Virus record (IMG/VR): IMGVR_UViG_3300022200_000019
Coordinates: 124,001 to 188,000 of that record
Direction: 5' to 3' (one strand)
Length of the DNA stretch: 64,000 nucleotides
The notes below the pieces were generated by a model. It was not told where the DNA came from. It was given only the letters and a program-made list of their open reading frames with translations, and ran no database searches. Position numbers and translations under genes: made by a program. Positions 5,055 through 63,897 of the stretch are shown here, piece by piece. The first letter of the stretch is position 1. Each line of letters starts with the position of its first letter.

Positions 5055-5229
5055 TGATTGGACAGTATTTGCTTTTCTCGCCAGCATTGTGCTGTTTATG
5101 GGCGTTATTGGTTGGACTGAGTACAAGTACAAGAAAGAGCACAATTGGTGCGAGCAGCAAGGCGGTTATCAAGTTAAAACTGATCGAGGCTGGCATTGTT
5201 TTGAAATGAAAGAAATCGTTAAGGACTAA
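5044..5229 (+). CDS. Small membrane protein
   Basis: One hydrophobic helix followed by C...GG...C motif. Confidence 0.6.
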   Translation: MDTDDWTVFAFLASIVLFMGVIGWTEYKYKKEHNWCEQQGGYQVKTDRGWHCFEMKEIVKD

Positions 5230-39836: not shown

Positions 39837-40190
39837 ATGTTAAAATTAGTCAAAACGCCAAAGAAAAAGAAGCCAACAGATTGTACATTTGAAAAGCCAG
39901 TTGACAATCAAAAAACAGCAGTTAAAATGTTAATGTGCTGTAACAGTAATAACAGAGAATATGTAATTGGCCCAGATGTAGGTTTAGATTTAAATGTATT
40001 GGTAACAAAAACAAAACCAAATTATTATTTCAATCCGGCTATAGTTGATAATGGTGTGCAATATCAAGATTACTTAGGTAACACAATGCACACAGATACA
40101 ATAACAGAAGCAATGCAAGAAGCATTAACAAGACTTGCAGGAACTAGAAGAACCAGGAAAAAAACGGATGCAAATCAATCCAGAAATTGA
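39837..40190 (+). CDS. Degenerate peptide deformylase-like protein
   Basis: VIGPDVGLDLNVLV...FNPAIV echoes PDF motif I; HExxH absent. Confidence 0.4.
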   Translation: MLKLVKTPKKKKPTDCTFEKPVDNQKTAVKMLMCCNSNNREYVIGPDVGLDLNVLVTKTKPNYYFNPAIVDNGVQYQDYLGNTMHTDTITEAMQEALTRLAGTRRTRKKTDANQSRN

Positions 40191-46770: not shown

Positions 46771-48662
46771 TGAACCTTTACGATCTATTTGAAGCCTTAG
46801 TTGGTCATGACATGCCTCGCAGCAAGAAATATAGCAGCGATCAGTCTGACTTTGAAATACAGCCGCAACTAGGTGAATTAATAGATCGTATCGAAGCAGG
46901 CGAAATCAAACCTAAAATTGTAAAACTAAACCCACAGAAATTACAAGCAACGCAAGGATGGCTAGATACTCGCAATGGTGGCGGTGCGCCATTGCTAGAT
47001 CGCTATACAAAATTACCTGTTATTCTTAAAGATCAATCAGGATATCATATCTTAGACGGGCACCATAGAACATCCCACGCTCTTAGTAAAGGACAACAAT
47101 CGATTAAAGTTTATCTATTTCGCATGCCCGACGATTTAAGCGAAGCATCGTTTGCTGATTTAAAGAAACTGGTTCCTGTGTATAATGTTGATGAATGGTC
47201 ACAAGAATTAGGTATTCCACGTAAGGTAGCATACTTATACGGCGAACTTGGTTACTTACAACGCGGCAAACCAGAACAGATTATGGTTAAAGTTCAACAT
47301 TTTATGGGCGGTGGCGGAGTTGTTCCGTTTTGCTTAGAACACGTAGGTGACTTGTCAGATCGTATGACACCTAGACATCCATTACATTGGAGTTATGGTG
47401 CTGTAAAAGAAAAAGCAGAAAAAACATACAGATCGTTAACACACAGTTATGGATTTGAGCGCGAGTTCCAAGAGAACCTAGACGCTACAATCGAATATCA
47501 AAAGATTGAAAATCCAGATGAGTATCGTGAGCGTGTATATCGTGCTATGCAAATGTATGCCGATGCACATAAAGAATTGCTTCCATACTGCCACACAGAT
47601 ATTCACAAGAATGCTGTATATGCTGCTATCTCATTGGGTGAAAGAAAGTTTGATGATGCTGCTACCTTTGTAGGTGCAATCAAACGTCTTTGTGCTAGCG
47701 AAGAAAGTTATCACAATGCGCTAAGAGCATATGATAAAAAACTAGATGGCAAACTAGCAGGCGAAGAAGTACTAGACGAAGCGGGCGAATGGTGGAAAAC
47801 ATTTTCAGATGTAGTTTCTGGATCAAAAAAAGCATATGATACCGCAGTTATTGCTGGTCCCAAATGGCAAGCAGCAATTGATAGCAAAGATCCAGTTGTA
47901 ATTGATCAAGGTATTAAAGACTTAGCAAAAGACTTAGGTATGGATCCAAACGATCCAAAATACAAGCAATGGGCAGGCAGTATGCGTTACAAAGCATACA
48001 AAGCAGCGGATATTAAACACGATGTAACACGAGATGCTGAACGTAAAGCCTATGCTGCTGATCCACGACACTGGAAGGAACTTGAAATTCCCGGTTATGA
48101 TGAACCCTGGGTTACATTTAGTAAGCCATCCCCACGTGGTATTCCGCTTCGTGTAGGCGGTGACAAAGTAGATGAAGAGGCTCTTGACCGTTTTGAGATA
48201 GGCATGGGATTAGAGCAGATGCATAACAATGACATTGCTCTTGTTGGTGGCATGCGTTCAGGATCAAGCCCTGCTAACTTAACACGTTTAAAATATAGCA
48301 TTTATGATGTTCCTATGCTAAAACAACTAAAGCAAACAGGTGGCAATCAAAATGACGCACTCATGGGCCATGTTGAATTAATGGTAGAAGATGGCACAGG
48401 CGATCTTATTGGTTTAATTAACATCGAAATGAAGCGCGGCGGCAAACGCCAAGGTTACGGCTCACAAGTTGTGCGTTCTATTATTGATAGTCCGTTTGCT
48501 CGCAAGCCATTTAGAATCTACGATATACAAAAGAAAGCTGTGGGTTTTTGGAAGAAGATGGGTGTAGAGTTTACACACTCAGACTTTAAAACTCCTATTG
48601 CGCCGACTCAGCTGCCCAGGCTTGCATTGGGACCAGGGAATATATTTGGAATCATACGATGA
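46770..48662 (+). CDS. ParB/Srx-like + GNAT acetyltransferase modular protein with CTS-like leader
   Basis: MNLYDLFE; LQATQ...PVILK...ILDGHHR; KRQGYGSQVV...AVGFWKKMG. Confidence 0.75.
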   Translation: MNLYDLFEALVGHDMPRSKKYSSDQSDFEIQPQLGELIDRIEAGEIKPKIVKLNPQKLQATQGWLDTRNGGGAPLLDRYTKLPVILKDQSGYHILDGHHRTSHALSKGQQSIKVYLFRMPDDLSEASFADLKKLVPVYNVDEWSQELGIPRKVAYLYGELGYLQRGKPEQIMVKVQHFMGGGGVVPFCLEHVGDLSDRMTPRHPLHWSYGAVKEKAEKTYRSLTHSYGFEREFQENLDATIEYQKIENPDEYRERVYRAMQMYADAHKELLPYCHTDIHKNAVYAAISLGERKFDDAATFVGAIKRLCASEESYHNALRAYDKKLDGKLAGEEVLDEAGEWWKTFSDVVSGSKKAYDTAVIAGPKWQAAIDSKDPVVIDQGIKDLAKDLGMDPNDPKYKQWAGSMRYKAYKAADIKHDVTRDAERKAYAADPRHWKELEIPGYDEPWVTFSKPSPRGIPLRVGGDKVDEEALDRFEIGMGLEQMHNNDIALVGGMRSGSSPANLTRLKYSIYDVPMLKQLKQTGGNQNDALMGHVELMVEDGTGDLIGLINIEMKRGGKRQGYGSQVVRSIIDSPFARKPFRIYDIQKKAVGFWKKMGVEFTHSDFKTPIAPTQLPRLALGPGNIFGIIR

Positions 48663-49120
48663 GAGCAAACGAATTTATCAGCGAAATTAACCTAGATCCA
48701 CGCTCGTGGTTTGGTGCTGGACAAATGGGTGGCCGTGGAGGCAGTGGCTCTCAAGCAGTTGCTACTGGCGGACGCACAGCACCAGCAACCGCCAAACCAA
48801 ATCTAGGTAAATTTGAACGTACACCAGATGGAAAGATCATTGATCCACAAGGACAGGTAGTTAATCCACGCACAGGCGATCCGTATACAAAAGCAGACGT
48901 AACCAGAGACACTGGTAAGAGTCCAGAGTTTAAGAGTATATCTCCAGAGCGTTCACACTATGCTAGAACTACACAAGCAGACCGTGTTAGAGACGAACGT
49001 GCTGCACGCAACATGGAACGTTATGCCGATGAATACCAAGCAGCAAAAACTAGATGGCAAGAAAAAGGTGATGCTGCTTCATTTGGCGATATGATAAAGA
49101 TTCTAAACAGAGTAGATTAA
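48659..49120 (+). CDS. CTS-leader hypothetical protein
   Basis: MRANEFISE; Gly-rich. Confidence 0.75.
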   Translation: MRANEFISEINLDPRSWFGAGQMGGRGGSGSQAVATGGRTAPATAKPNLGKFERTPDGKIIDPQGQVVNPRTGDPYTKADVTRDTGKSPEFKSISPERSHYARTTQADRVRDERAARNMERYADEYQAAKTRWQEKGDAASFGDMIKILNRVD

Positions 49121-49353
49121 TGCGTGAATTGAGATATAACACGGAAACATTAGGTTTTTCGTCACCAGACGATAGTTGTTATCTAGATCCCAGCGATCCT
49201 ATACACGAATTTCGTCGCACAGGCAATGCTGCTGCATTAAATCAACCACGACGTATTCCAGTTGCACAACAGTTTGCAGAACATGAACGTAAAATGGAAT
49301 TAGCAAAAGCACAGGGTATTCGTCCTGGTTCCCCAGCATGGTATATGTTATGA
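49120..49353 (+). CDS. Hypothetical protein
   Basis: DDSCYLDPSDPIHE...GIRPGSPAW. Confidence 0.7.
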   Translation: MRELRYNTETLGFSSPDDSCYLDPSDPIHEFRRTGNAAALNQPRRIPVAQQFAEHERKMELAKAQGIRPGSPAWYML

Positions 49354-50174
49354 AAGTATCAGAAATTATTTGCGAAGGCACTGGTATCGACCAGCACATC
49401 GCGCCGGAATTATTGCAACAACAAGTAAATCAAATCATTGATGCTATTAAAGCAGGCGGTTATTTGTTAACGGATGCTGATAAAGCCTTGCTCGATTATG
49501 CACGTAAACAAAAAATCTATCATCCAGATGAAATTGCGAATAACAAATTCCATAAATCAATAATCGCATCTGTTAAGCCGTTGCTAAAAAAAATAGAACA
49601 GCTATGGTCTGAACCACGCGATATAACCAGTGATGTTGAAGCAATTATTGGTGAGCCTATTCTTACCCTTCATCAAAAAATAAAACCATTGCTTGCAAAT
49701 CCTAATAGACAACCAATGGATTATGTTGTGCGAGCAAACTTAACACAATTATTAATTGCTGCTGCATGCCCAAAAAACAATGGCACTTGGGATACCAGCA
49801 CAGCCAAATGCTATTCAAACAATTATCCTTGGATATTAGATCAGGTGAAGGAAAAGTATCGTGCTAAAGACAGAAAACGCCGTGCCAACATGACTCCAGA
49901 TGAAAGAGAAGAGGTTCAGGCTAAAGACAGAGAATATCAGCAACAAAGACGGGATACCATGACTCCAGCTGAAAGAGAAGAGTATTTGGCTTACGACAGA
50001 GAACGGAAACGTAACCGTCTTGCCAACATGTCTCCAGCTGAAAGAGAAGAGTATCGGGCTAAACATAGAGAATATTACCAACAGTGGACGGCTAACATGT
50101 CTCCAGCTAAAAGAGAAGAGTATTTGGCTAAAAAAAGAGAACGGCAACAACGGCGGAAGGCCAAGAAAAAATGA
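49350..50174 (+). CDS. CTS-leader protein with 23-aa charged repeats
   Basis: MKVSEIICE; ATG 49350. Confidence 0.75.
   Translation: MKVSEIICEGTGIDQHIAPELLQQQVNQIIDAIKAGGYLLTDADKALLDYARKQKIYHPDEIANNKFHKSIIASVKPLLKKIEQLWSEPRDITSDVEAIIGEPILTLHQKIKPLLANPNRQPMDYVVRANLTQLLIAAACPKNNGTWDTSTAKCYSNNYPWILDQVKEKYRAKDRKRRANMTPDEREEVQAKDREYQQQRRDTMTPAEREEYLAYDRERKRNRLANMSPAEREEYRAKHREYYQQWTANMSPAKREEYLAKKRERQQRRKAKKK
49890..50165 (+). repeat. 4 x 69-bp coding tandem repeat
   Basis: ATG(A/T)CTCCAG(A/C)T(G/A)AAAGAGAAGAG... = M(T/S)P(A/D)(E/K)REE...RE. Confidence 0.9.
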
Positions 50175-50374
50175 AAGTATCAGAAATCATCAACGAAGGT
50201 GTAGGACGTATTACGCCGCAAAACCAAACACAGGATGTCGGTCCTGATCAAGTTTCTATTGAAGCAAAGAAATTAGGTTTTAAAGTAGATCGGGATGGTC
50301 GCCCACCACTTTTAAGTTCAAACGCAAAGAAAAACACAAATCCTAACACACTATTCAATCTTGGCATAAATTAA
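50171..50374 (+). CDS. Small CTS-leader protein
   Basis: MKVSEIINE-GVGRIT... Confidence 0.75.
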   Translation: MKVSEIINEGVGRITPQNQTQDVGPDQVSIEAKKLGFKVDRDGRPPLLSSNAKKNTNPNTLFNLGIN

Positions 50375-51780: not shown

Positions 51781-52852
51781 AGGTGGGATGTTCGAACCGT
51801 TACGGTGGAGTGGGAGCATTCGGGACTTTCCTTATTTTAACGAGTATCCGTGGCTTGAACGTTATAAAACTAAAAACTATTATGTTGGTGCAAGTGCCGC
51901 TTGGGATTTTTTTCAAGATCTACCCATTGGGTTTGACGCATATATCTTTATCCATCATGTAGAGTTATGCGATCCTAAATGGCTCAAACAACAACAAAAA
52001 AGAGTCAATACGCCGTTTTATGTTCTGTTGTCGGGAAATGACTATAACATTAATATTCCAAATACTACTTTTATTCCATATACACATTGGCACTATGATT
52101 TACAAAAAATAGTTGACTGGTGGGGTATACAAAAAACACCCGACCATAAAAAATATAAATTTAGTGCAGTTAATAATAGAATTACACAAGCAAAAGTTTG
52201 GATTACCACTAAGTTATTAATTTCTAGTAGAAATGAATCATTAATAATTAATAATCCAAATTGGATTGAAAGTAAGAATATACATAACTGGGAGCATTGT
52301 GGAAATCCTATTCTAGACGAGTTGACCGATATTTTTTTACAAGAGTTCATCGACTTAGAACTCAAAGACGAGTTTGATAAGGATAAAAATTTTCAAAGGT
52401 ATAATTCTAATCCATGGCAGCCATTATATACAGACACCTCTATACATTTTACAAACGGTAGCCATCATTATAGTTTTATGATGGATGACTATTTTCCATA
52501 CACGTTTCCCGGACCGCATATTGATGAAAAAACATTTAAATGCTTAGTAGCAGGTACTGCATTTATACCAGTTGCGCAATTTGAAATTTATAAATCGTTG
52601 GAAAATTTTGGATTACAGTTTGATTATGGTTTTAACACTGAATGGGATAACGACCCTGGTAACTTGTCAAGATTTGAAAACATTATAAAATTAATTGATT
52701 TGCTAAATGATTACTCAAAAGAAGAACTGTACAGCAAAACAAAAGACATCTCAATTTATAATCAACAATACATATTTGATGGCAAATTCTATAAAAATTG
52801 CGAATTACACAATGAAGAATGCATTGAACAGTTGCATCAACTAATAGCATAA
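51758..52852 (+). CDS. Hypothetical, possibly glycosyltransferase-like protein
   Basis: IDEKTFKCLVAGTAFIP resembles GT10/exostosin-type C-terminal motif; AT-rich. Confidence 0.55.
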   Translation: MGMLLQNKGGMFEPLRWSGSIRDFPYFNEYPWLERYKTKNYYVGASAAWDFFQDLPIGFDAYIFIHHVELCDPKWLKQQQKRVNTPFYVLLSGNDYNINIPNTTFIPYTHWHYDLQKIVDWWGIQKTPDHKKYKFSAVNNRITQAKVWITTKLLISSRNESLIINNPNWIESKNIHNWEHCGNPILDELTDIFLQEFIDLELKDEFDKDKNFQRYNSNPWQPLYTDTSIHFTNGSHHYSFMMDDYFPYTFPGPHIDEKTFKCLVAGTAFIPVAQFEIYKSLENFGLQFDYGFNTEWDNDPGNLSRFENIIKLIDLLNDYSKEELYSKTKDISIYNQQYIFDGKFYKNCELHNEECIEQLHQLIA

Positions 52853-52862
52853 ATACGTCTAT

Positions 52863-55091
52863 ATGAACTTAAATGACATCCTCAACGAAAAAATTAAGAA
52901 AGTACATGGTAAGTGGGCCCTGGTAAGCAAAAGCGATCCGGATAAAGTCTTACAATATTATCATGGCAAAGACCATCCTAGCAAAGAATGGGAAAAGAAA
53001 GTTGAGCGTCGTGTTCATGCATTCTCAGAAGCAGAAAGTTTAGACAAAACCATTGATAGAATGCGTAACTTAGATATCGATGATATCGAACACCTGAAGC
53101 GTTATTCAAACCCACAATTAAAAGATTGGTTAAAACGCTTAACAGCAGCAAATAAAAACAATATTGGTTCAGCACTTAATACATTAGACACTATGGGTCC
53201 TATTGCTAAACCATTTGCTAAGTCATTTGTACAAAAGCAATTTCCAGGCATCGACGATACAGAGTTTGACCAAGCCTGGAAGTTCTGGCAAGAAACTGAT
53301 CCAGCAACTCGTTCAGCAGTTACTAAAGGTGACTTGACTACGCTTGATCCAAGAGACGAACATGGCTTTGTTAAAGAAGCCAATAATGACATAGTAGCGA
53401 ACAGTATCAATGAATACAATACCGACGGCATTGATCCAGGAAACGATGAACTATTTGTGCCTATGGGTCTGCTCAACCGTTTTGAAGATAATGGGTGGTA
53501 TGCATTTGACGGCGGTCGAGATCAAGCGGTGTTAGCCAAACGCAACATACCTTATGTGCTGAAAATTGTAGGTCAAGGATCGCACAACAGAATTGACGCA
53601 GTTCGCCAGTATGTTGATTTCTTTCGTCGCAATCAACATAATCCACATTTTCCCAAAGTGGGTAGTGATAAAACACTAACCTGGGAAGGCAAAAAATACT
53701 ATGCTTACGCTCAAGAAAAACTTATAGATTTACCGGGTGATGCGGTGATGGATTATCTCGAAGATACTATGCAATCATTTGGTCACAGCGGAAAACAGCC
53801 TAACTTTGACAAAATACCCCAGGGGCTGTCAGCAAAGCAAGTTAAAGGTTTAATGAATGCTATTAGTGAGTTGCTTGCATCGGGCATAGGCAATAATCGT
53901 GCGTTTGATTTGGGTAATGTCCTGAATATTATGAAACGAAAAAATGGACAGCTAGTGATTGTTGATCCATTTAGTTCTCACGATCGTTTAGATCCTAGCG
54001 AAGAATACGTGAGCGAAACAGATGATTATGATGCTTGGTTAGAAAAAGCCAAAAAACGTGCAGAAAAGCAAGCAGCAAAAAAACGTGCTGAATTACAGCA
54101 AGTAATGAAGGGCATCGAAACCGATCCAGAAAAACTAGCATTACAAGGTACAATTCAAGCGGCACGCGGTGAGCTTAGTAAGCGTAAGCGTGAAGCATTG
54201 GCTAAGATGGAGCAAATGAAACAAATTTACTCTGAGTTTTCTGATGAAGAATTAGATAAAATTATCGGGCGTTATTCAAAAGGTCCAGGTGCTGGTTCAG
54301 ATTTTGTGGAATGGTTAAAGTCCATTAAACAAGAACGCGAAGACGAGCGGTCTGGTGTTCAACAACGACAGGATGTATTTAGAAGCGTGGCAGGACCCAT
54401 GCAAGGCAAACAAAGCCAAAAGGCTGCACCTGCACAAGGTAAACCATGGACACAGTTAGGTATGACTCGTGATGAATTTAGAAAAATTCTAAACAACCCA
54501 CAACATCCTCGTCATAGAGAAATTAAACAATTACACGATCAGTATAAACAAGTCGACGAAGATTTAACTCGCAGAGATTTCTTAAAAGGTGTCGCAGGCG
54601 GGGCAATGGCGCTAGGGGCTATGAAAGCTGCTAAAGCATTAGGATTAAAAGATCCTACCAGATCCACAGACACTGATGATCAGTACCAGAGATTCACAGG
54701 CGCAAAACCTGCACCATTGTATGCTAAACCAGACCTGGATCCAGAACGTAAATGGAACCGTGTGGGTGTCAATCAACCAGGCGGTCAGTTCAGCATTGTG
54801 CTACACAAAGACTTTGATTTATATTTGTATTTTGTAACACGTGATTTTTCCACATCGCCCTATGCCTACATAGAATTACAGGATGGTGAAAAATATAAAT
54901 TCCGCATTCGTACTCTGAAAAACGATACATTTACCATCGAAGATCCCAGAATGGCAGCAACACTATTGAATTATCAAGGTAAATTCAATCTGTATGTTGG
55001 CGATGACGTGTACACATTTAACATCATGCCCAGTCAGGAATCCAAAGTATTATATCGCTGGTGGAAAGAAGGCACACATCAGGGATTGTGA
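52863..55091 (+). CDS. CTS-leader modular protein: kinase-like domain + internal Tat-signal module
   Basis: MNLNDILNE; GGRDQAV...VLK...FDLGNVLNIM...IVDP; VDE-DL-TRRDFLK. Confidence 0.75.
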   Translation: MNLNDILNEKIKKVHGKWALVSKSDPDKVLQYYHGKDHPSKEWEKKVERRVHAFSEAESLDKTIDRMRNLDIDDIEHLKRYSNPQLKDWLKRLTAANKNNIGSALNTLDTMGPIAKPFAKSFVQKQFPGIDDTEFDQAWKFWQETDPATRSAVTKGDLTTLDPRDEHGFVKEANNDIVANSINEYNTDGIDPGNDELFVPMGLLNRFEDNGWYAFDGGRDQAVLAKRNIPYVLKIVGQGSHNRIDAVRQYVDFFRRNQHNPHFPKVGSDKTLTWEGKKYYAYAQEKLIDLPGDAVMDYLEDTMQSFGHSGKQPNFDKIPQGLSAKQVKGLMNAISELLASGIGNNRAFDLGNVLNIMKRKNGQLVIVDPFSSHDRLDPSEEYVSETDDYDAWLEKAKKRAEKQAAKKRAELQQVMKGIETDPEKLALQGTIQAARGELSKRKREALAKMEQMKQIYSEFSDEELDKIIGRYSKGPGAGSDFVEWLKSIKQEREDERSGVQQRQDVFRSVAGPMQGKQSQKAAPAQGKPWTQLGMTRDEFRKILNNPQHPRHREIKQLHDQYKQVDEDLTRRDFLKGVAGGAMALGAMKAAKALGLKDPTRSTDTDDQYQRFTGAKPAPLYAKPDLDPERKWNRVGVNQPGGQFSIVLHKDFDLYLYFVTRDFSTSPYAYIELQDGEKYKFRIRTLKNDTFTIEDPRMAATLLNYQGKFNLYVGDDVYTFNIMPSQESKVLYRWWKEGTHQGL

Positions 55092-55411
55092 CCGTATAGG
55101 TCTTGTGTGGACAACATCTCCCATTTGTCCCATTCAGGACGCCAGTGATATTTGTATTCTCTGACTTTGCGAACCACCGTGGTAGACACATAATCACGGC
55201 AACCGCCAAACGGATCGCAATGTCTGGCTGATTTATCCTCTATGTGATATTGTTCCACAGGAGATTCATAATCTTTGGCACGATACTGATCCTGGCTGGT
55301 CGCCCATTCCCAGATTGCAGTGCTTGCCAGACTGATGCCCAGCGAATCCAGAAATGCTGGAGCCGCTGGACTATACAGACTAATTGTGGCGATCAGAATC
55401 AGCTGGCGCAT
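55079..55411 (-). CDS. Secreted hypothetical protein
   Basis: Signal-peptide-like N-terminus. Confidence 0.65.
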   Translation of the reverse strand: MRQLILIATISLYSPAAPAFLDSLGISLASTAIWEWATSQDQYRAKDYESPVEQYHIEDKSARHCDPFGGCRDYVSTTVVRKVREYKYHWRPEWDKWEMLSTQDLYGHNP

Positions 55412-55980
55412 TAACGACGTTCTAGATCTTCAAATGCACGTGCAGCCGCAGATTCATCTGTGACTGTGATGGATTCAGCCACAGCAACTTTTTCGGAAAT
55501 GCCAAGAGACAGGTTAATGTATGCACGATACATGGTTCCTTCCTTGAACACAGCCTTGTTGACTACACGATAACCGTTCACAGGAACATCTTTAAATTCG
55601 CTGACAGACACAAACTCGTTGGTCTGTGTAGAGTCGCTGGTTACGCTCTTGCGATTATCTGCGGTATACTGCTTAAATTTACCTGAAGTAAGAGCAGATA
55701 CTTTGTCGCCCAGTTTGATCTTAGCACTATGCAATGCTTTCTCCATTGCAAATTCCATGTCATCTGCGAGACCAGTTGCAGCAGCATAGATAATGCTACC
55801 ATCTTCAACACCTGGATCCAGATACCATACAGGTACAATTTCCTTCTTTTCAAGTGGCACAACACCAACAACGTCAACACCGCCGACCTTGTCTTCTGCT
55901 TCCATTCGTGCTACACTGCTGTTAGACGCACAACCGCCCACAAAGGCAGCAGCCATAGCAATTACGATTACCTTTTTCAT
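55411..55980 (-). CDS. Lipoprotein (LPP20-like)
   Basis: MKKVIVIAMAAAFVGG-C lipobox; PVWY...IYAAATG...A..KAL..AK..L. Confidence 0.75.
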   Translation of the reverse strand: MKKVIVIAMAAAFVGGCASNSSVARMEAEDKVGGVDVVGVVPLEKKEIVPVWYLDPGVEDGSIIYAAATGLADDMEFAMEKALHSAKIKLGDKVSALTSGKFKQYTADNRKSVTSDSTQTNEFVSVSEFKDVPVNGYRVVNKAVFKEGTMYRAYINLSLGISEKVAVAESITVTDESAAARAFEDLERR

Positions 55981-56129
55981 TTCTTTGTAACTCCAGTAGA
56001 GTCAATAATTTGAGACTTAACAGAATTATAATCTGCTTCGAGTCCCGCCATTGTGCCCTTGAATGGGTTAATACCTGTAGCACAAACAGCAAGAGCAACG
56101 GCAAGTACTACAATAATCAAAGTTTTCAT
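55977..56129 (-). CDS. 50-aa exported peptide
   Basis: MKTLIIVVLAVALAVCATGINPFKG...; SD AGGA; ATGA overlap with lipoprotein gene; not in track. Confidence 0.6.
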   Translation of the reverse strand: MKTLIIVVLAVALAVCATGINPFKGTMAGLEADYNSVKSQIIDSTGVTKK

Positions 56130-56166
56130 AATTAAAATTCATTCCTATATTGCGAAATGTATCTAT

Positions 56167-56194
56167 ATTATACACAATGCTAATCTAATGTCAA
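56167..56194 (-). promoter_or_regulatory. Sigma70-type promoter of the reverse operon
   Basis: TTGACA-16 bp-(TG)TATAAT on the - strand. Confidence 0.75.
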
Positions 56195-56221
56195 CCATTA
56201 ATTTTGTTGCATAAATACAAC

Positions 56222-56491
56222 ATGCGTGCCACAGAATTTTTAACAGAATCTTATCCAACAGTAACAATGAATTACCAGCAGTTTCTCGTTGAAGAACCTG
56301 TAAAAAGTTCATGGATTGAAGATTTATCTTATGTTGAATTCAAAGACGGATCTGGTGGTGTAAACATGACCACAAAGGGTGGCCGCACTTATTTTATCGA
56401 AGACGTACCATACGAAGTCTACGAACGCTGGTTAAAAGCTCTTAGCAAAGGCAAATTCTGGTGGTCAGACATCAAATACTTCTATACTTAA
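56222..56491 (+). CDS. KTSC-domain protein with CTS-like leader
   Basis: MRATEFLTE; VKSSWIEDLSY...GRTY...VP..VY..W..A.SKGKF...IK..Y. Confidence 0.8.
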   Translation: MRATEFLTESYPTVTMNYQQFLVEEPVKSSWIEDLSYVEFKDGSGGVNMTTKGGRTYFIEDVPYEVYERWLKALSKGKFWWSDIKYFYT

Positions 56492-56509
56492 TACCCGCAT
56501 AAATAGTAG

Positions 56510-57835
56510 ATGCGAGCAAGAGATTTCATTCTACTAGAATACAAGCACGACGTTACGATGAGAAACTATGGTGAAAAGTTTCGCGATCGCATGCTTGGCG
56601 ATATGACCATTACTGCTAGTACTCAGAGTAAACTAGAAGATGCTAAAGCTAAAGGCATAGGTCCGTCCAGTGATACGTTCACTCCAGGCTATCTAAGAAG
56701 AATCGAACAATCAGATCCAACTCCAAATCGAGAATACACACAGTGGATGGTGCGTAGTTATATTAACCGTGTTGTTAATTATTACGAAGACGTATTATCT
56801 ACACTTGCGGGCTTTGCTGGTATGTTTAACGAGCTTAAAATACATCGTCGTTTACCAGAAAAATATCGCGACATTAATCAAATCAAAACTCGAGAAATCT
56901 TTCGTGATGCTTATCGAGCAGTTGCTGATCGATATGAAGAATTCCGCGACGAACAGCAAGAACAGAAACCACTAAGCAAAGGCCACGCACAAGAAGTCTA
57001 CAACGGACCAGAAGTGAGAATCATCCATCCTGTAGACCAAGCGGCTGCTTGTTACTATGGGCAAGGTACACAGTGGTGTACTGCTAGTACACGCAGCCAA
57101 AATTACTTTAATGATTACAACAACGAAGGTCCGTTATTAATACTAATTCCCAAGAAGCCAGCGCATGAAGGCGAGAAATATCAATTACATGCTGCTAGCG
57201 AACAAGTTATGGACGAGCATGACAGTTCTGTTCCAATGGGTCACGTAGTAAGTAGATTCCCCAATACCAATCTTGGAGAGATTCTAATTAAATTTGATCC
57301 TGAATGGAAAGACTTTGCAGAACTAATGCATCCAGATGATCTTAAACGAATTGTTCGTTTGTATAACCAAAGACTTGTAAACTTTAACAAATGGATCTTG
57401 GATCAATACACCCAAAACAGCTCAATGTCAAAACAGCAACAACAAGAACTAAAAGCTGCTGCGGAACGTGCTGGTTGGCCAAACGCTGGTACATTCACAT
57501 ACGATCAGTTTGCTGAATATCTACGTACTGGATCTATCCATTCTAAGGAACGTTTTATAAGAACACTAGTTGATCTATCTTATGATTTATTAATCCCGCA
57601 TTTAAGAAGCAATGACGCTCTTGAGCAGTTTGACAAGACTCCTAGAGATGTTTTAAATACTCAAGGAATGGTAGGATTAAGCAAAAGAAACTTTGTTCAA
57701 ACATGGACAGTATTATTAAATGACTGGAGAATTCGGTTTAGTGATGAAGATCCAGATTGGGCAACATATGTTGGGCCTACTAACAACAGCATGTATAATA
57801 ACGCAGTAGGGTATACCGATTGGAGTAGCCGATGA
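56510..57835 (+). CDS. CTS-leader paralogue 1 (DPTPN / YYGxGTxWCTA family)
   Basis: MRARDFILLE; shared core with three downstream genes. Confidence 0.85.
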   Translation: MRARDFILLEYKHDVTMRNYGEKFRDRMLGDMTITASTQSKLEDAKAKGIGPSSDTFTPGYLRRIEQSDPTPNREYTQWMVRSYINRVVNYYEDVLSTLAGFAGMFNELKIHRRLPEKYRDINQIKTREIFRDAYRAVADRYEEFRDEQQEQKPLSKGHAQEVYNGPEVRIIHPVDQAAACYYGQGTQWCTASTRSQNYFNDYNNEGPLLILIPKKPAHEGEKYQLHAASEQVMDEHDSSVPMGHVVSRFPNTNLGEILIKFDPEWKDFAELMHPDDLKRIVRLYNQRLVNFNKWILDQYTQNSSMSKQQQQELKAAAERAGWPNAGTFTYDQFAEYLRTGSIHSKERFIRTLVDLSYDLLIPHLRSNDALEQFDKTPRDVLNTQGMVGLSKRNFVQTWTVLLNDWRIRFSDEDPDWATYVGPTNNSMYNNAVGYTDWSSR

Positions 57836-59166
57836 GAGCTCGTGAATTTATCGTAGAATATAAACGCGACATTACCATGAAAAACTGGTACGACAAGATC
57901 TTACGGCAACAAATGGTCGATAAAACCTACACCACACACGCTCAAAATGAAATCAGAGATTGGCTGGAAAAACGTGCTCGAGGAGAACTAACTCAACTTG
58001 AACAAGAGTTGTTAGATCAATCAGTCGAAATGATAGTAAGACAATTTGAATCTGCAGATCCAAGTCCAAACAAACAGTATGTACAATGGATGTTGCGTAT
58101 TTGGACCAATCCAAATGGTGTTGGCAGAATCGAAGATGTTACGTCCACAACAGCAGAAATGCTACACAAGTACCACGAACTAAAACAACGCAATCGTTTG
58201 CCTATTGACATTCGCGACATTAACCAGGTTAAGGATATGCGAACACTGGAAAAGTTGCACGATGATGTGGATCGTTTATATGCATTACTAGATAAAGATA
58301 AAATAGCAGCAATGCCAAAAGGCTCTGCTCGTGAAGTATATAACGGACCAGATTTTAGACTTATCGTTCCAGAAGATGAAGCAGCCGCTTGTTATTATGG
58401 CCAAGGAACACGCTGGTGTACGGCAGCAACCAAGGGTCATAATATGTTTGATCACTATAGTAAGGCTGGCCCTATCTACATTCTCATTCCTAAAAAGCCA
58501 GAGTATGAAGGTGAAAAATATCAATTACACGGCGCATCACGCCAATCAATGGATGAACGAGATCAGCCATACTATATTGGTAATTTACTTGGCAGATTCC
58601 CTGAGCTAAAAGAAATATTATTTTCTACTGATGATTTTTATAGTTGGGTTGAGATAATGCCGGATGCTTTTGTTGAGGATGGCGTTGCTACCTGGAATGC
58701 GTATGCTGCGAAACATTTTAAAGAATGGGGTCTAACACAAGTATTGACTGGTTGGACGCGAACTGCTAAGAATCGCGGCGAGATTGTGGATGTACAAAAA
58801 ACCTGGGAAAAGGTTAGAAAAGTATTGCTTGACTTGCTAGCAAATAGCGAAGTTTCAGTAGCAGACTTTTATGATGCTGCTACACAGACGCACATCAAAG
58901 GCGATACTGGTGCTACAGATGCTGAAAATGAGTTTGCTCGAATACTTTCATATGCGTGGAAGTATAACCTGATAGAAGCGTTAAAAGCCGGTTATCTGGG
59001 TGTGAATGCTAAGGTTAGTTTAGAACATCCTGAATGGGATATTACAGTTCGTGTAATAGATTCTGAAGCGAACGCCTGGAAAGATTCCACTGCCGAGTGG
59101 AGCAATGACGAGGGCTGGGAATTCTCCATTAATGATCCCGAAGATACTCGCTACAATGAGGACTAA
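57832..59166 (+). CDS. CTS-leader paralogue 2
   Basis: MRAREFIVE; DPSPNKQYVQW, ACYYGQGTRWCTA. Confidence 0.85.
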   Translation: MRAREFIVEYKRDITMKNWYDKILRQQMVDKTYTTHAQNEIRDWLEKRARGELTQLEQELLDQSVEMIVRQFESADPSPNKQYVQWMLRIWTNPNGVGRIEDVTSTTAEMLHKYHELKQRNRLPIDIRDINQVKDMRTLEKLHDDVDRLYALLDKDKIAAMPKGSAREVYNGPDFRLIVPEDEAAACYYGQGTRWCTAATKGHNMFDHYSKAGPIYILIPKKPEYEGEKYQLHGASRQSMDERDQPYYIGNLLGRFPELKEILFSTDDFYSWVEIMPDAFVEDGVATWNAYAAKHFKEWGLTQVLTGWTRTAKNRGEIVDVQKTWEKVRKVLLDLLANSEVSVADFYDAATQTHIKGDTGATDAENEFARILSYAWKYNLIEALKAGYLGVNAKVSLEHPEWDITVRVIDSEANAWKDSTAEWSNDEGWEFSINDPEDTRYNED

Positions 59167-59168
59167 AT

Positions 59169-60485
59169 GTGAGAGCCAAAGAGTTTTTATTAGAATATAA
59201 CAGAGACATCACCAAAAAGAACTATGGTGACAAGATTGTTCTGCGCTGGGGCGTGGGAGCTGTTAGCAGTGGATTAAGCATTCGCCGTGTACACGACAAG
59301 ATTCTTGCTGGCGAACCATTGGATGCCAACGAACAAAATGTTTATGATGAAGCAGTTGCTAACATTATTAACAAAGCAGAAATTGCTGACCCAACTCCAA
59401 ACAAACAATATGTACAGTGGCTTGTTCGTGCGTGGATCAATAAACTGCTAAGACTTGCTGAAGATATTCTTTCATCAGGCAGTGAGTTTGTTAAAATGTG
59501 GCACGAGTTAAAAACTCACCGTATGCTACCGCCAAATTACACAGACATTAACAGAATTAAAACACCGAGCGATTGGAATCAGGCCTGGGTGGATATTCGA
59601 GCAGCATACGAAAACTTCAAACCCAAGAAGCCAATGCCCAAAGGCAAGGCACGTGAACTGTTAAACAATGCGGAAGTAAGAATCGTTCGCCCAGAAAATG
59701 AAGCAGCGGCTTGCTATTACGGACAAGGCACACAGTGGTGTACGGCTGCTACAGAAACACGCAACTTGTTTGATCATTATCACAAAGATGGCGATCTAAG
59801 TATCTTTATTCCTAAGAATCCACGGTACGAAGGTGAAAAATATCAACTGTGGGTCAATAACGACACTGGTGGATATCAGTTAATGAACGAACAAGACGAT
59901 CCACTTGAATACGGCCTAGAAGAACTAACAGACAGATTTAATACATTAACTTATGAGATTTTAGAAAAACTACATCCAGCACTAATGAAACATCCTGAAT
60001 TTAACACTGAAGAATTTGAGTCAGTTAAACGGCAAATTGCTGTTAACCTATTCAAAAATGGATACTTCAAATTAGCATATAGCGATCTAATTAATATGCT
60101 TGATGATTCATTTGACGAATACGACAAAGATTCCATTAATTATATGAAAGAAATGTTTATGGAAATGGAAGCTGAAGTGTTGCGAGCTATTAACAATGTT
60201 GGATACGATGAACTCGCATTTAATGATCCTGGTGTAACATTCCCTGAGTTACCCAATGCTGTATTTAGATGGCTTGAATACATGACTGATGACACCAACA
60301 TGTGGGGCGATTGGGCTGACGACGAATATATGGTAGGCTTTATCAGCAACATTGAAGCCTGGTTTAACAGACAAACAAATTGGGACAAGCGTAATCAGAA
60401 TCAAACTCTGATACCGTACTACAGCATCAAACAAGACGAAAAAACTGGAAAGTGGGAAGTAGAGTACGAAGGCCCGTGGACATGA
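59169..60485 (+). CDS. CTS-leader paralogue 3
   Basis: (GTG)RAKEFLLE; DPTPNKQYVQW, ACYYGQGTQWCTA. Confidence 0.85.
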   Translation: MRAKEFLLEYNRDITKKNYGDKIVLRWGVGAVSSGLSIRRVHDKILAGEPLDANEQNVYDEAVANIINKAEIADPTPNKQYVQWLVRAWINKLLRLAEDILSSGSEFVKMWHELKTHRMLPPNYTDINRIKTPSDWNQAWVDIRAAYENFKPKKPMPKGKARELLNNAEVRIVRPENEAAACYYGQGTQWCTAATETRNLFDHYHKDGDLSIFIPKNPRYEGEKYQLWVNNDTGGYQLMNEQDDPLEYGLEELTDRFNTLTYEILEKLHPALMKHPEFNTEEFESVKRQIAVNLFKNGYFKLAYSDLINMLDDSFDEYDKDSINYMKEMFMEMEAEVLRAINNVGYDELAFNDPGVTFPELPNAVFRWLEYMTDDTNMWGDWADDEYMVGFISNIEAWFNRQTNWDKRNQNQTLIPYYSIKQDEKTGKWEVEYEGPWT

Positions 60486-61885
60486 GAGCAAACGATTTAA
60501 TTTTTGAATACAAGCGTGACGTAACCGTAAAGAATTATACTGACAGACTGATTGATCGTATGATCAGCGATGGCAGTGTCGAACGTATGACGTTTGGCGG
60601 CAATGGATGGGGTTACACCACAGATGATATGTTTGATATGGTTCGCGGCATTCAGTGGCAGAATCAACCGCCGTTGACTCCAGAAAAAGTAGAAGCAGCC
60701 AAGGAAATATTTGCGAGAGGTGCTATTACACAAATTGAGCAAGCAGATCCTACCAGTAAAAAAGCCTACACAGAATGGTTGGTAATGGCATATATCAACA
60801 GTATATTTGTGCGTTGGGAAGACATATTCTCAACTGGAACTGATTTCTTAGCAATGTATAACGACCTAAAGCAACGCAACTTATTTAATAAAGTCGATAC
60901 TCTTAAAGCAGTATCAAACATTAAACAAATCAACAATCGCGAAAGATTTAGATGGGCATATACTACAATTTCAAACGCACACGATTTTTATCTCGGTCAA
61001 ACCACAGACATTGATCGCGGCGATGCTGAAGAAATCCACAACGGACCAGAAGTTCGTGTACTAAAAGTAAACGATCAAAAAGCAGCGTGTTATTATGGAC
61101 GCGGCACAGAATGGTGTACAGCAGCAACACGTTCTCGCAATATGTTTGATCACTATAACCGTACTGGAAACATATACATATTCATTCCTAAAAAGCCACA
61201 GCACGACGGTGAAAAATATCAGTTCTGGGCAGGCGACGATGGGCGCAACGTTGATATTCAACTAATGGACGAACACGACGAGCCAGTAGATTTTGAAACC
61301 TGGGACAATCGTTTTCCAGGATTGGGCATCAAATACTTGTATGATCTTGAACCTAAGGTATTGAGTCAGTTTGTTATGTTTAACCGAAAGCGATTTGATT
61401 ATATCATAGCCGAAGTTGTTGAACTTTTACAAAACAACTGGAAATGGGATGTCGTTGCTGACTGGGAGCATGACGATGATTATTATTGGCAATGGTTGCG
61501 TGACGAAGGTTACATAGATGACGAAGGCGACTTTGATGATGATAAAATGGAAAAAGACGGCATAAACTATCTAGAGTTTAACGACGATTTGCGCCGAGGA
61601 CTAAACGACGTGTTTGACGCTTTTGAAGAACTTACACCGTCAGAACTCAATAATTTTTATAGTGATGACAATGGTGGACCATTGGACTTCTACCGTATGA
61701 TTGATACCTTAGGTGACTGGATAGAAGATCAAGCCGGCAGTCACTATGAAAGTTTATTCAAAGATGCCGGTAATTTCATTGCCAATAATATTGGCAGTTA
61801 CTCAGATAAGGAAGGTAACTTTAAGGTAGATCATGTTGCTAATATTCGCGGTACACCTTATCTAGCGCATCCAGCTAGACGATAA
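60482..61885 (+). CDS. CTS-leader paralogue 4
   Basis: ATG 60482, MRANDLIFE; DPTSKKAYTEW, ACYYGRGTEWCTA; acidic C-terminus. Confidence 0.85.
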   Translation: MRANDLIFEYKRDVTVKNYTDRLIDRMISDGSVERMTFGGNGWGYTTDDMFDMVRGIQWQNQPPLTPEKVEAAKEIFARGAITQIEQADPTSKKAYTEWLVMAYINSIFVRWEDIFSTGTDFLAMYNDLKQRNLFNKVDTLKAVSNIKQINNRERFRWAYTTISNAHDFYLGQTTDIDRGDAEEIHNGPEVRVLKVNDQKAACYYGRGTEWCTAATRSRNMFDHYNRTGNIYIFIPKKPQHDGEKYQFWAGDDGRNVDIQLMDEHDEPVDFETWDNRFPGLGIKYLYDLEPKVLSQFVMFNRKRFDYIIAEVVELLQNNWKWDVVADWEHDDDYYWQWLRDEGYIDDEGDFDDDKMEKDGINYLEFNDDLRRGLNDVFDAFEELTPSELNNFYSDDNGGPLDFYRMIDTLGDWIEDQAGSHYESLFKDAGNFIANNIGSYSDKEGNFKVDHVANIRGTPYLAHPARR

Positions 61886-61915
61886 ACTAAATACTATATC
61901 AAAGAGAAAAATATC

Positions 61916-62494
61916 ATGAACTTATCCGAAGAACTCAGAAAATATGCCAATATCTTAAATGAAGAACGCACAGACGAATACTTTGATTATGGCGACGATG
62001 CCGATACCAGCAATGAACCAGCAGGTATGCCGTTTTATAAACTGCCTGCAAAAAGTTCAGCAGTAAAAATCACAAATAAAGCGCACCAAGCCGGACTAAA
62101 CACAGTTGAGTTTCAAGGACAATATCTGAGTGTTTCGCCTAACCAAGCCGATCGGCTGGAAGAACTAATGCGTGCCATGCGCATGCAGTTTACGCCGGTA
62201 ACGGGTGTTCCTGATTGGGGTGCAGATGATTCACATCTAAGTCGCAAAGAACGTGCTCGTGGCATGCCATATAAATTTAGCGAAAACAAATCGGTAATTC
62301 GTAAAAGATTTCCCAAATTAGAAAAAGCAATTATTCAAGATCAAGATCCAGAGTTGGCATCTCTGTATGCCATAAAGGTAATCGGAGGCAGATGGCCCGA
62401 AGCAGAACCAGTGATTGCCAAAGATTCAGAGTCGGCATCTCTGTATGCCCGATATATACTCAAAGGTCCTTGGCCCGAAGCAGGGATCAAATGA
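61916..62494 (+). CDS. Candidate head protein with 26-aa C-terminal repeat
   Basis: MNLSEELRKYANILNE; ASLYA..(V/I)..G(R/P)WPEA x2. Confidence 0.75.
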   Translation: MNLSEELRKYANILNEERTDEYFDYGDDADTSNEPAGMPFYKLPAKSSAVKITNKAHQAGLNTVEFQGQYLSVSPNQADRLEELMRAMRMQFTPVTGVPDWGADDSHLSRKERARGMPYKFSENKSVIRKRFPKLEKAIIQDQDPELASLYAIKVIGGRWPEAEPVIAKDSESASLYARYILKGPWPEAGIK

Positions 62495-62904
62495 GAGCAA
62501 GAGAATTCACATCTGAAGCAGATATGACACGTAGAGATTTTCTCAAACGTGCAGCAGCAACACTGGCAGCACCAGCAGTAGCAAAGGCTGGTCCTCCGGT
62601 TAGTGACGAAACTACCCAAGCAGTTGATCTAGCACAAGATCCAAACTGGATGCCACTATACAAAGACGGCGAACCAGTTACTGCTCCTCCATATGCTCAA
62701 GAGTTATATGGCAAGGGTTATCCAAAAGATACAGATTATCGTCCCGTTGATCCAATTGATTCGTTTGAAAAAGACCCAGACGTTCAGAGATTCTATGATC
62801 TCAAAGCAAAACGTTGTTTGGCAAACCGTGGCACACCAGTAAAGGATGCGCAAGGTAACATAGATTGTACGCAAGTACGTGGTAAAGCATCGCAAACATG
62901 GTAG
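62491..62904 (+). CDS. CTS-leader protein with Tat signal
   Basis: ATG 62491; MRAREFTSE-ADM-TRRDFLK-RAAATLAAPAVAKA. Confidence 0.8.
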   Translation: MRAREFTSEADMTRRDFLKRAAATLAAPAVAKAGPPVSDETTQAVDLAQDPNWMPLYKDGEPVTAPPYAQELYGKGYPKDTDYRPVDPIDSFEKDPDVQRFYDLKAKRCLANRGTPVKDAQGNIDCTQVRGKASQTW

Positions 62905-63449: not shown

Positions 63450-63770
63450 ATGAAAGATACAGTATTCGTAAAACTCTGTGTGGATTTACACTGTGACTGG
63501 CAGGGGTTGCCACCAGATTACCGTATCTATGTGGACAATGAATTGTTTGCTGAACGCACTTATCGTTGGGAAAAACCTGTATACCTGACAGAAATTCTTC
63601 AGATTAATGCAGTGCCTGACACAGAATATCTGGTCACACTGGACGATTTTGCACCACAGATTGCAAATTTCAAGATGTCAAACCACAGAGTTGAATATTG
63701 TGACTTGCCTGTGGAATTTAACAAGTGTAAAGACAAAAAATTTAGGTTTAAAGTTAAAAATGAAAGTTAA
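63450..63770 (+). CDS. Hypothetical beta-rich protein
   Basis: TAAATA 4 nt upstream; YRIYVDNELFAERTY. Confidence 0.75.
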   Translation: MKDTVFVKLCVDLHCDWQGLPPDYRIYVDNELFAERTYRWEKPVYLTEILQINAVPDTEYLVTLDDFAPQIANFKMSNHRVEYCDLPVEFNKCKDKKFRFKVKNES

Positions 63771-63897
63771 TGAGATAATTTCAGAAATGACCAGTGCTGG
63801 TGCTGTTGCCGCAGTAGCGCAACCATTAGGCGGCACAATTAGTCGTAACCAGGGCGTATATACCAAACCAAAAAAGAAAAAGAAGGGTAAAAAATGA
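63760..63897 (+). CDS. 45-aa CTS-leader basic peptide
   Basis: MKVNEIISE-MTSAGAVAAVAQP...KPKKKKKGKK; ATG 63760. Confidence 0.7.
   Translation: MKVNEIISEMTSAGAVAAVAQPLGGTISRNQGVYTKPKKKKKGKK

Follow-up and report, generated by a model that had tools for sequence, protein, structure and literature searches.

Predicted Tat export signals on head-type proteins of an uncultured T4-related jumbo phage

Introduction

In phage T4 the internal proteins IPI, IPII, IPIII and Alt carry a short N-terminal capsid-targeting sequence, MKTYQEFIAE (PMC8442874). The prohead protease gp21 cuts after L/I-X-E, and this sequence is able to load foreign proteins that are then delivered into cells (PMC9026906). T4 cargo is delivered into the next cell (PMC9026906, PMC8442874). 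In giant phages (phiKZ, 201phi2-1, SPN3US) many head proteins are cut after Glu at short S/A-x-E motifs, some of them at several sites, and a mass of proteins is ejected into the host (PMC9026906). Bacterial class I twin-arginine (Tat) signal peptides, on the other hand, have the consensus S/T-R-R-x-F-L-K followed by a weakly hydrophobic Ala/Gly-rich h-region and a c-region ending in AxA, often with a basic residue. Internal Tat signals placed after a folded cytoplasmic domain are a recognised class of substrates, with FecR as the example (PMC13673990). In chloroplasts, lumen proteins that use the thylakoid Tat pathway have bipartite transit peptides, in which removal of the first signal by a processing protease exposes a Tat signal for the second membrane step.

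Here we describe two late genes of an uncultured jumbo phage of the T4 superfamily, related to Atu_ph07/Rak2-like phages and to PA5oct, in which a conserved Tat-type signal follows a short leader or junction resembling those used by T4-type phages to load and trim proteins in the capsid. The genes are located in a 64,000-nt stretch (the window; positions 124,001 to 188,000 of IMG/VR record IMGVR_UViG_3300022200_000019), and 188 kb of the 213-kb parent contig was examined. The original prediction, made from the sequence of the window alone, was that the Tat signals of both genes are masked behind head-protease sites.

Two full-consensus twin-arginine motifs

The predicted motifs were confirmed at their positions and in their sequence. 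Gene 62491-62904 (+ strand, 137 aa) starts MRAREFTSE-ADM-TRRDFLK-RAAATLAAPAVAKA, with the motif at 62527-62547 (residues 13-19). Gene 52863-55091 (+ strand, 742 aa) carries QVDE-DL-TRRDFLK-GVAGGAMALGAMKAAKA internally, with the motif at 54567-54587 (residues 569-575). The RR pair is thus at residues 14-15 of the primary product of gene 62491 but at residues 570-571 in gene 52863, where an internal Met 34 residues upstream is not conserved.

Given the composition of the long open frames of the window (18 578 aa), 0.0013 matches to [ST]RRxFLK are expected, while two were observed; none of 2000 residue shuffles gave two or more. In 188 kb of the parent contig these are the only two full-consensus motifs. 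The two motif stretches differ at synonymous codon positions, so they are not the result of a recent DNA copy.

The NCBIfam profile TIGR01409 (TAT_signal_seq, cut-off 16.7 bits) gave 17.3 bits for gene 52863 and 21.2 bits for gene 62491, with 21.7-27.0 bits in homologues. Still, with Pfam PF10518 we observed 19.4 bits for both genes, below the cut-off of 22.7 bits, although two homologues (P0017 and P0019) carry a precomputed PF10518 hit.

Conservation in homologues

Conservation of RR and of the upstream Glu in homologues had been named beforehand as a check, and both were found to be conserved. The motif is nearly invariant: RR, F, L and K are retained, apart from conservative changes (SRREFLK, SRRDLLK), in 23 homologues, and a Glu is conserved two to three residues upstream. 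In the 742-aa family EDLTRRDFLKG showed a mean pairwise identity of 0.94, against 0.46 for the h- and c-region and 0.66 for the passenger domain; the motif is the most conserved stretch of the whole C-terminal half. The h- and c-region of gene 52863 (GVAGGAMALGAMKAAKA, 54588-54638) and that of gene 62491 (RAAATLAAPAVAKA, 62548-62589; some homologues instead have AAATTAAAAGVGSA) both end in AxA. In spite of sequence drift, this region is always 14-21 residues long and Ala/Gly-rich, with a K or R near the end, a Kyte-Doolittle mean of 0.7-1.4 and AKA or ARA at the end in all forms measured. Such a pattern is expected for working signal peptides. It should be noted that all homologues come from a narrow clade in a few related metagenomes. 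The motif plus the start of the h-region is 68-71% identical to the start of bacterial ORFs in metagenomes that read TTDLSRRDFLKG...

Architecture of the two proteins

The 742-aa modular protein was found as an identical protein in an independent ENA assembly (P0009), and 12 further homologues share the internal motif. Its leader, MNLNDILNE (52863-52889), is a variant of the cluster leader (see below) that ends in L-N-E; L7, N8 and E9 are invariant in 13 homologues, and the relative P0030 has MRANEFLNE in the same place, before the same small domain. An optional kinase-like insert (53379-54020, residues 173-386), bounded by V-K-E and V-S-E, is present in this family only in the window protein and in P0010; it recurs in P0022-P0027 beside other enzyme domains, and has a weak match to methylthioribose kinase (E 0.097). 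The V-D-E site at 54552-54560 (residues 564-566) is a candidate Glu-specific cleavage site: P3 is V or I and P1 is E in 13 of 13 homologues, with D at P1' in all. The C-terminal passenger (54756-55088) is a predicted beta-sandwich domain, with AlphaFold2 pLDDT above 90 over most of it; a search of PDB gave no match with E below 0.001, only weak Ig/filamin/CBM-like hits.

Every module boundary in the 742-aa family is a hydrophobic-x-Glu site: the invariant sites L-N-E, F-S-E, V-K-E and V-D-E, as well as V-S-E at the end of the insert, coincide with module and insert boundaries. The small carrier domain, when internal in the relatives P0028 and P0029, is preceded by L-D-E or I-S-E. P0031 has two signal peptides in one chain, each before a copy of the same domain and each after L-S-E or V-N-E, though its first signal has KK rather than RR. 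P0032 is a stand-alone ‘leader + L-D-E + SRRDLLK + domain’ form.

The 137-aa protein consists of a leader, the Tat-type signal and a small Cys-containing mature part. It is encoded by the last gene of the run 56510-62904, and its start, an ATGA overlap with the upstream stop, is supported by homologues that all begin MRA[RK]EF. In its leader (MRAREFTSE, 62491-62517) R2, A3, E5, F6 and E9 are invariant in nine sequences. The site before the signal is T-S/T-E in this family, with Thr at P3, outside the L/I-X-E motif of the T4 protease. One homologue, P0002, has a 70-residue domain inserted between two -SE|A junctions.

A cluster of leader-bearing late genes

Ten genes at 48.6-63.9 kb begin M-[RK]-[AV]-x-[ED]-[FIL]-x-x-E; with the variant of gene 52863 the cluster has 11 genes. 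The leaders (MRAREFIVE, MRAKEFLLE, MRATEFLTE, MRAREFTSE and others) resemble the T4 capsid-targeting sequence, and most cluster genes have L/I-X-E at the end of the leader; on 10 neighbouring genes the leader ends in hydrophobic-x-Glu. On the + strand we found three small genes at 48659-50374 (starts 48659, 49350 and 50171; MRANEFISE, MKVSEIICE and MKVSEIINE), five genes at 56222-61885, including four paralogues (starts 56510, 57832, 59169 and 60482), and a gene at 63760-63897 for a 45-aa protein with a Lys-rich tail (MKVNEIISE). Eleven of 16 leader matches in 188 kb fall in this 15-kb stretch; MRSLSEFLTE occurs elsewhere on the contig. Both full-consensus Tat motifs sit on leader genes, while the other exported proteins of the phage (CsgG, CsgF, curlin-like, FecR-domain) have plain N-terminal Sec or lipoprotein signals and no leader.

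A T4-late-promoter-like motif, CATAAATA (52848-52855, + strand), is located 7 nt upstream of the ATG of gene 52863, and the same motif stands before genes 56222 and 56510. All 12 NATAAATA sites on the + strand lie 4-32 nt upstream of an ORF start; the - strand has one site.

The evidence for presence in virions is indirect. The homologue of the neighbouring paralogues in Pseudomonas phage PA5oct (EST35_0205) is annotated as a structural protein found by ESI-MS/MS, and PA5oct homologues of another leader protein, encoded elsewhere on the contig, are also virion proteins by mass spectrometry. The closest cultured relative by DNA polymerase, Atu_ph07, has a Peptidase_S77 prohead protease and a Gp23-type capsid protein; these proteases themselves start MALxLxE. 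However, no S77 protease (searched with a profile of Atu_ph07-like proteases), Gp23 capsid protein or portal was detected in the 188 kb examined, which excluded about 25 kb of the contig itself (1-10.7, 116-124 and 206.8-212.9 kb, of which 116-124 kb was screened only through a locus from another assembly); the contig may also be incomplete.

Interpretation

We consider it likely that both elements are functional Tat signals, and propose, more tentatively, that they are carried by late proteins which the phage first loads into its capsid. In this view, the leader of roughly nine residues, followed by a small carrier domain in the 742-aa family, would take the protein into the prohead. A Glu-specific protease of the T4 gp21 type would cut at hydrophobic-x-Glu junctions, removing the leader and separating the modules of the large protein, so that the passenger is left with a Tat signal at its new N-terminus or two to three residues from it. 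After ejection into the cytoplasm of the next host the ready-made protein would fold, be exported by TatABC and be released by signal peptidase at AxA; Tat suits a protein that arrives already synthesised and can fold before export. Our analysis establishes the motifs, their pattern of conservation, the leader cluster, the late-promoter motifs and the junction pattern, while packaging, cleavage, ejection, export and a periplasmic role (exclusion of other phages, envelope repair or blocking of a periplasmic defence) are inferred from sequence alone.

The original prediction was thus right about the motifs, but its interpretation, that cleavage inside the capsid unmasks the signal and permits re-export after injection, is only partly supported. 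In its favor are the conserved Glu, which belongs to a wider pattern, and the forms with two signal peptides (P0031) or with an inserted domain (P0002), which are easiest to explain by cleavage. The premise that Tat needs an N-terminal signal is not strictly true, given the FecR class. Also, the supposed mask of gene 62491 is only 12 residues long, an ordinary Tat n-region, so the uncleaved protein should already be Tat-competent; it could be exported in the producing cell and never packaged. Finally, ‘EDL’ before the RR pair resembles ‘TDL’ at the start of the bacterial ORFs, and that Glu may simply be a part of the signal.

The main alternative, which we regard as unlikely but least so among the alternatives, is that these are ordinary Tat substrates exported late in infection by the producing cell, with no passage through the capsid. 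Gene 62491 would encode a standard cleavable precursor whose n-region happens to be the family leader. The product of gene 52863 would be threaded by its internal signal as in FecR, which can work without cleavage: the N-terminal modules would stay in the cytoplasm and the beta-sandwich would go to the periplasm, possibly released at AxA, with a function in lysis timing, exclusion of other phages or envelope remodelling. The position of RR in gene 62491 is a normal Tat layout, the phage invests heavily in envelope proteins, with a curli CsgG/CsgF operon and lipoproteins, and no protease gene was found in the sequence examined. Still, the other exported proteins start directly with their signals, both Tat genes sit in the leader cluster whose PA5oct homologues are virion proteins, the short Gly/Ala-rich h-regions ending in AxA would be poor stable anchors, and P0031 could not place both copies of its domain outside without a cut between them.

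A membrane-active helix of an ejection protein, inserted into the inner membrane during genome delivery and only incidentally similar to a Tat signal, was also suggested in the original prediction and is quite unlikely. Ejection proteins of other phages, as in P22, form a trans-periplasmic conduit after ejection (PMC8402733), and the hydrophobic stretch does follow a leader typical of head proteins; however, a membrane helix would not need the nearly invariant S/T-R-R-x-F-L-K, the basic c-region residue and the conserved AxA, which are specific to Tat recognition and signal peptidase, and the stretch is weakly hydrophobic and the least conserved part. Least likely, in our opinion, is an inert relic of a captured host gene for a periplasmic protein. 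The similarity to bacterial ORFs and the high modularity of the family would agree with such an origin, but the motif is conserved while neighbouring residues drift, it occurs on two unrelated passengers, and no bacterial homologue of the passenger domain was found among 1.84 billion representatives.

It is possible, though less than even in our estimate, that we see a targeting route of two steps in two cells, by which the host's own Tat system would move a pre-made phage protein into the periplasm within moments of infection. The same cassette logic, with hydrophobic-x-Glu junctions between modules, would let these phages pack several effectors as one polyprotein and send each to a different compartment.

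Comparison with known systems

As in the case of the T4 internal proteins, we see a late-expressed cluster of unrelated small or enzymatic proteins sharing only a short leader with E-F-(I/L)-x-E. However, no T4 internal protein is known to carry an export signal, and here some carriers are large multi-module proteins with several candidate cut sites, with packaging and cleavage inferred and the protease gene not located in the sequence examined. The signals have the elements of bacterial class I Tat signal peptides and TIGR01409 scores above the cut-off, but they are encoded by a lytic phage; one lies 568 residues into the protein, while the n-region of the other is a phage leader shared with non-exported neighbours. 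Internal Tat signals of the FecR type (class V) and the Streptomyces Rieske type (class IV) also follow a cytoplasmic part, as 568 residues of modular domains precede the motif in gene 52863. Those signals are uncleaved membrane anchors of regulators or respiratory proteins, whereas here, by sequence inference only, the hydrophobic run of 12-16 residues, Gly/Ala-rich and interrupted by Lys, does not look like a stable anchor; it drifts in sequence and always ends in a signal-peptidase site, with a conserved Glu junction just upstream. With the processed head and ejection proteins of giant phages the locus shares candidate sites for cutting after Glu, though of a different motif, and no export signals have been reported on their products. 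The proposed order of two signals in series parallels that of the thylakoid lumen proteins, except that the first compartment would be a virus capsid rather than the stroma, and the two steps would take place in two different cells.

Genome context

The window (positions 124,001-188,000) belongs to a metagenomic phage contig of 212,917 bp, IMGVR_UViG_3300022200_000019, also recorded as Ga0196901_1000001. No relative at the DNA level was found in the GenBank phage set. The family-B DNA polymerase is 42-50% identical to those of Sinorhizobium phage Phosso, Agrobacterium phage Atu_ph07 and Rak2-like jumbo phages; PHROG matches include a clamp loader, PhoH, MazG and a baseplate wedge connector, and part of the tail and neck region is syntenic with Pseudomonas phage PA5oct. 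The octamer NATAAATA, which resembles the T4 late promoter TATAAATA, occurs 12 times on the + strand (window 8613, 16205, 16501, 19259, 36738, 39824, 43734, 52848, 56210, 56498, 63155 and 63438), each time 4-32 nt before an ORF start, and once on the - strand. In seven cases the gap to the start codon is only 4-7 nt, which suggests leaderless or nearly leaderless late mRNAs. The phage is therefore an uncultured jumbo member of the T4 superfamily.

Transporter-type auxiliary genes were seen at window 29977-31434, 34432-35586 and 35730-36686: a TctA tricarboxylate transporter subunit, an ammonium transporter (Amt) and a PstS-like phosphate-binding protein. At contig 201.5-207 kb (locus L019:15417-20732) GTP cyclohydrolase I and PTPS suggest 7-deazaguanine-type DNA modification, and next to them lies a 1289-aa protein with a subtilisin (Peptidase_S8) domain.

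Twin-arginine motifs and their conservation

The original prediction had reported two genes, 62491 and 52863, with a full twin-arginine (Tat) consensus, and this observation held: both sequences are exactly as it described. The full motif [ST]RRxFLK is expected 0.0013 times in the 18,578 residues of the window's long open frames, while it occurs twice, so that chance was rejected; no other full-consensus motif was found in the 188 kb of the contig that could be assembled. Both proteins pass the curated cut-off of NCBIfam TIGR01409, while both fall about 3 bits short of the cut-off of Pfam PF10518. A recent DNA duplication between the two genes was also rejected, as the two stretches differ at synonymous codon positions; thus, selection acts on the peptide. 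We considered an internal translation start just before the internal signal of gene 52863; however, the only nearby Met (LGMTRDEF) is not conserved and there is no in-frame start codon between it and the motif.

The small protein encoded by gene 62491 has eight cluster representatives at 45-94% identity, in which R2, A3, E5, F6, E9, A10, D11, R14, R15, F17, L18 and K19 are invariant while the hydrophobic stretch changes, from AAATLAAPAVAKA to AAATTAAAAGVGSA. The 742-aa protein encoded by gene 52863 has 12 homologues at 63-86% identity, with lengths from 522 to 742; all have EDLTRRDFLKG at internal positions from about 357 to 570. Mean pairwise identity is 0.94 for the motif, 0.46 for the h/c-region, 0.50 for the linker and 0.66 for the passenger domain. 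Nevertheless, the h/c-region always has 14-21 residues, is Ala/Gly-rich, has a Lys or Arg near its end, and ends AKA or ARA. A fixed recognition motif combined with a drifting hydrophobic core of conserved properties and a cleavage site is how working signal peptides evolve. The motif plus the start of the h-region is 68-71% identical to the start of bacterial ORFs in metagenomes that read TTDLSRRDFLKG... We consider it well supported, though inferred from sequence alone, that these are functional Tat signals.

In a search for more family members, the 742-aa gene, its C-terminal domain and the EDLTRRDFLK pattern were found in IMG/VR only on the window's own contig. IMG/VR also contains a few close relatives of the small gene; the phage GenBank set gave no match apart from the first 61 residues.

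Leader peptides of the gene cluster

Ten genes between 48.6 and 63.9 kb of the window begin M-[RK]-[AV]-x-[ED]-[FIL]-x-x-E, and gene 52863 begins with the variant MNLNDILNE. With a looser pattern, 11 of the 16 matches in 188 kb fall in this 15-kb stretch. We asked if the leader could be a general feature of late genes or of translation, and rejected this, since most genes with the NATAAATA motif lack it, its codons vary synonymously and it is confined to about 16 ORFs; it is therefore a peptide signal of a subset of genes. The leader closely resembles the T4 capsid-targeting sequence MKTYQEFIAE (PMC8442874). That ten-residue peptide loads T4 internal proteins, and foreign proteins fused to it, into the prohead; the gp21 protease removes it after L/I-X-E, and the cargo is delivered into the next cell (PMC9026906).

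The four tandem paralogues next to the small Tat gene (window 56510-61885; 438-467 aa) share the leader, the YKRD(I/V)T stretch that follows it and a CYYGxGTxWCTA motif. They match PHROGs 28193 and 17056 (function unknown) and have a PA5oct homologue annotated as a structural protein by mass spectrometry; so does another leader protein elsewhere on the contig, which begins MRSLSEFLTE. The phage encodes a ClpA-like double-AAA unfoldase, ClpX, ClpS and a ClpP protease (window 40135-42453; contig about 98-100.4 kb, locus L147:2146-3345 and 4790-5104; about 117 kb, locus L010:3238-3861). Cutting after the leader of the four paralogues would leave an N-terminal Tyr, a ClpS-type N-degron residue, though this may be coincidence. 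Another leader-bearing protein (window 49338-50174) has a C-terminal array of basic repeats (...MTPxEREEY...) with weak STPR-repeat matches, and may be a DNA-binding internal protein.

Modular architecture of the 742-aa family

The 742-aa family is built from cassettes in the following order: leader; a roughly 47-residue domain; an optional insert; a conserved domain; an optional kinase-like insert; a coiled-coil region; the Tat signal; and a predicted beta-sandwich. The invariant hydrophobic-x-Glu sites are L-N-E9, F-S-E56, V-K-E172 and V-D-E566, while V-S-E385 closes the kinase-like insert; these fall at the module and insert boundaries. The 47-residue domain (KKVxGKWALVSK...YYHG...PSKEW...ERRVHxF; window 52890-53030, locus L008:6001-6204 and relatives P0028-P0030) follows the leader or an internal L/I-x-E site in many large proteins. 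In relatives P0028 and P0029 it is internal and is preceded by L-D-E or I-S-E, and in Stenotrophomonas phage RAS14 it stands alone as a 67-aa protein; it may be the real carrier or docking domain. The kinase-like module of roughly 210 residues (window 53379-54020; weak match to methylthioribose kinase) moves between many leader-bearing multi-domain proteins. In relatives P0022-P0027 it sits beside other enzyme domains; its partners carry Pfam GNAT acetyltransferase, GH19 or acid-phosphatase domains, or a HAD-like DxDxT motif, and the linkers repeat '(L/V)-x-E|NFADG'.

Three relatives are especially telling. P0032 (183 aa) is a stand-alone form with leader, L-D-E, SRRDLLK, h-region and the same beta-sandwich. 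P0031 has the small domain, then L-S-E followed by a Sec-like signal (KK, a more hydrophobic core, AQA) and a diverged copy of the beta-sandwich, and then V-N-E, DLTRRDFLKG...ARA and a second copy. In P0002 a 70-residue domain is inserted between two '-SE|A' junctions, ahead of the Tat signal. Two export signals in front of two copies of one domain cannot both work unless the chain is cut between them.

Passenger domains

The C-terminal domain of the 742-aa protein gives a confident beta-sandwich model, yet no solved structure in PDB matches it below E 0.001; the weak hits are Ig, filamin and carbohydrate-binding-module-like, and protein-atlas leads were also weak, scoring 0.71 to CBM/DUF6805-like clusters. 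The small protein is mostly modeled with low confidence (pLDDT 51). It has one invariant Cys and a second in most members, which suits an extracytoplasmic protein. Searches of the passengers against Pfam and PHROGs gave nothing. Exclusion of other phages, envelope repair or blocking of a periplasmic defence could be suggested as their roles only as guesses.

Other envelope proteins of the phage

A curli-type secretion operon lies at contig 101.1-105.6 kb (locus L147:5539-9957) and encodes CsgF, a CsgG lipoprotein, a FecR-domain protein and curlin-repeat proteins, all with plain N-terminal signals; a CHASE2-guanylate cyclase lies next to it. Between the two Tat genes, a small island on the - strand (window 55079-56129), where GC content is locally higher, holds three ORFs, two of them with lipoprotein-type starts (...FVGGC, ...LAVC); the lipoprotein-like ORFs are at 55.4-56.1 kb. 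Those of the phage's other envelope proteins that we inspected start directly with Sec or lipoprotein signals and have no leader, while the only two Tat signals sit on leader genes. Proteins made in the infected cell can use Sec as they are synthesized; a protein that arrives ready-made can fold in the cytoplasm, and Tat is the pathway that exports folded proteins. This contrast fits a two-step model, though it remains an argument rather than a test.

Search for a prohead protease

To find a protease that could cut at the Glu junctions we screened every ORF of the contig from 10.7 to 116 kb and from 186 to 206.8 kb in addition to the window, 188 kb in total, with a profile built from Atu_ph07-like Peptidase_S77 proteins and with the Atu_ph07 capsid and portal proteins. 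Nothing was found; still, positions 1-10.7, 116-124 and 206.8-212.9 kb of the contig itself were outside this screen, the 116-124 kb stretch being covered only through locus L010, which comes from another assembly and shares the flanking genes, and the contig may be incomplete. In a profile search of a large protein database, none of the best 120 of 8000 or more proteases was on a 212,917-bp contig. The prohead proteases of this phage group (Atu_ph07-like S77 proteases, set A6, loci L021-L063) themselves begin MALxLxE or MSTKLTE; this is an L-x-E site at residue 7, like the LIE-9 site noted for T4 gp21.

Interpretation

The original prediction proposed that cleavage in the capsid unmasks a Tat signal, so that an injected protein could be exported by the next host, and this interpretation is partly supported. 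Its premise that Tat needs an N-terminal signal is not an absolute requirement: a 2026 review lists five substrate classes, including internal uncleaved signals after a folded cytoplasmic domain, with FecR as the example (PMC13673990). The 12 residues before the RR pair of gene 62491 are a normal n-region length and cannot be called a mask; this protein could thus also be exported in the producing cell. Its candidate site is T-S-E, not L/I-X-E. The 'EDL' before the internal motif parallels the 'TDL' at the start of the bacterial ORFs, so that Glu may belong to the signal itself.

What the sequences establish is the presence of the two motifs, which are clearly under selection; loading into the capsid, cleavage, and export in the next host are inferred. 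The best single explanation, which we hold tentatively, is two-step targeting, capsid first and then Tat export in the next host. Late export in the producing cell, including FecR-like threading of the large protein, is less likely but remains the main alternative; a membrane helix unrelated to Tat is improbable, and an inert relic more improbable still. Even on the plainer reading, a lytic jumbo phage with conserved Tat substrates, one of them with an internal signal, is unusual; we found no description of either in the literature searched, and no paper describing Tat signals on phage head-type proteins.

If the two-step reading is true, it adds a compartment to what injected phage proteins can reach, and would be a new early-infection strategy that could serve to exclude competing phages, repair the entry wound or counter periplasmic defences. 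T4-type capsid targeting is already used to deliver foreign proteins, and a leader-plus-Tat cassette would extend delivery to the periplasm. Each part belongs to a known kind, while the combination is new. Known virion-delivered proteins act in the cytoplasm or form the entry channel; these would be posted to the periplasm by a host pathway before any phage gene is expressed, and the arrangement would be a bacterial-virus counterpart of the two-part transit peptides of chloroplasts.
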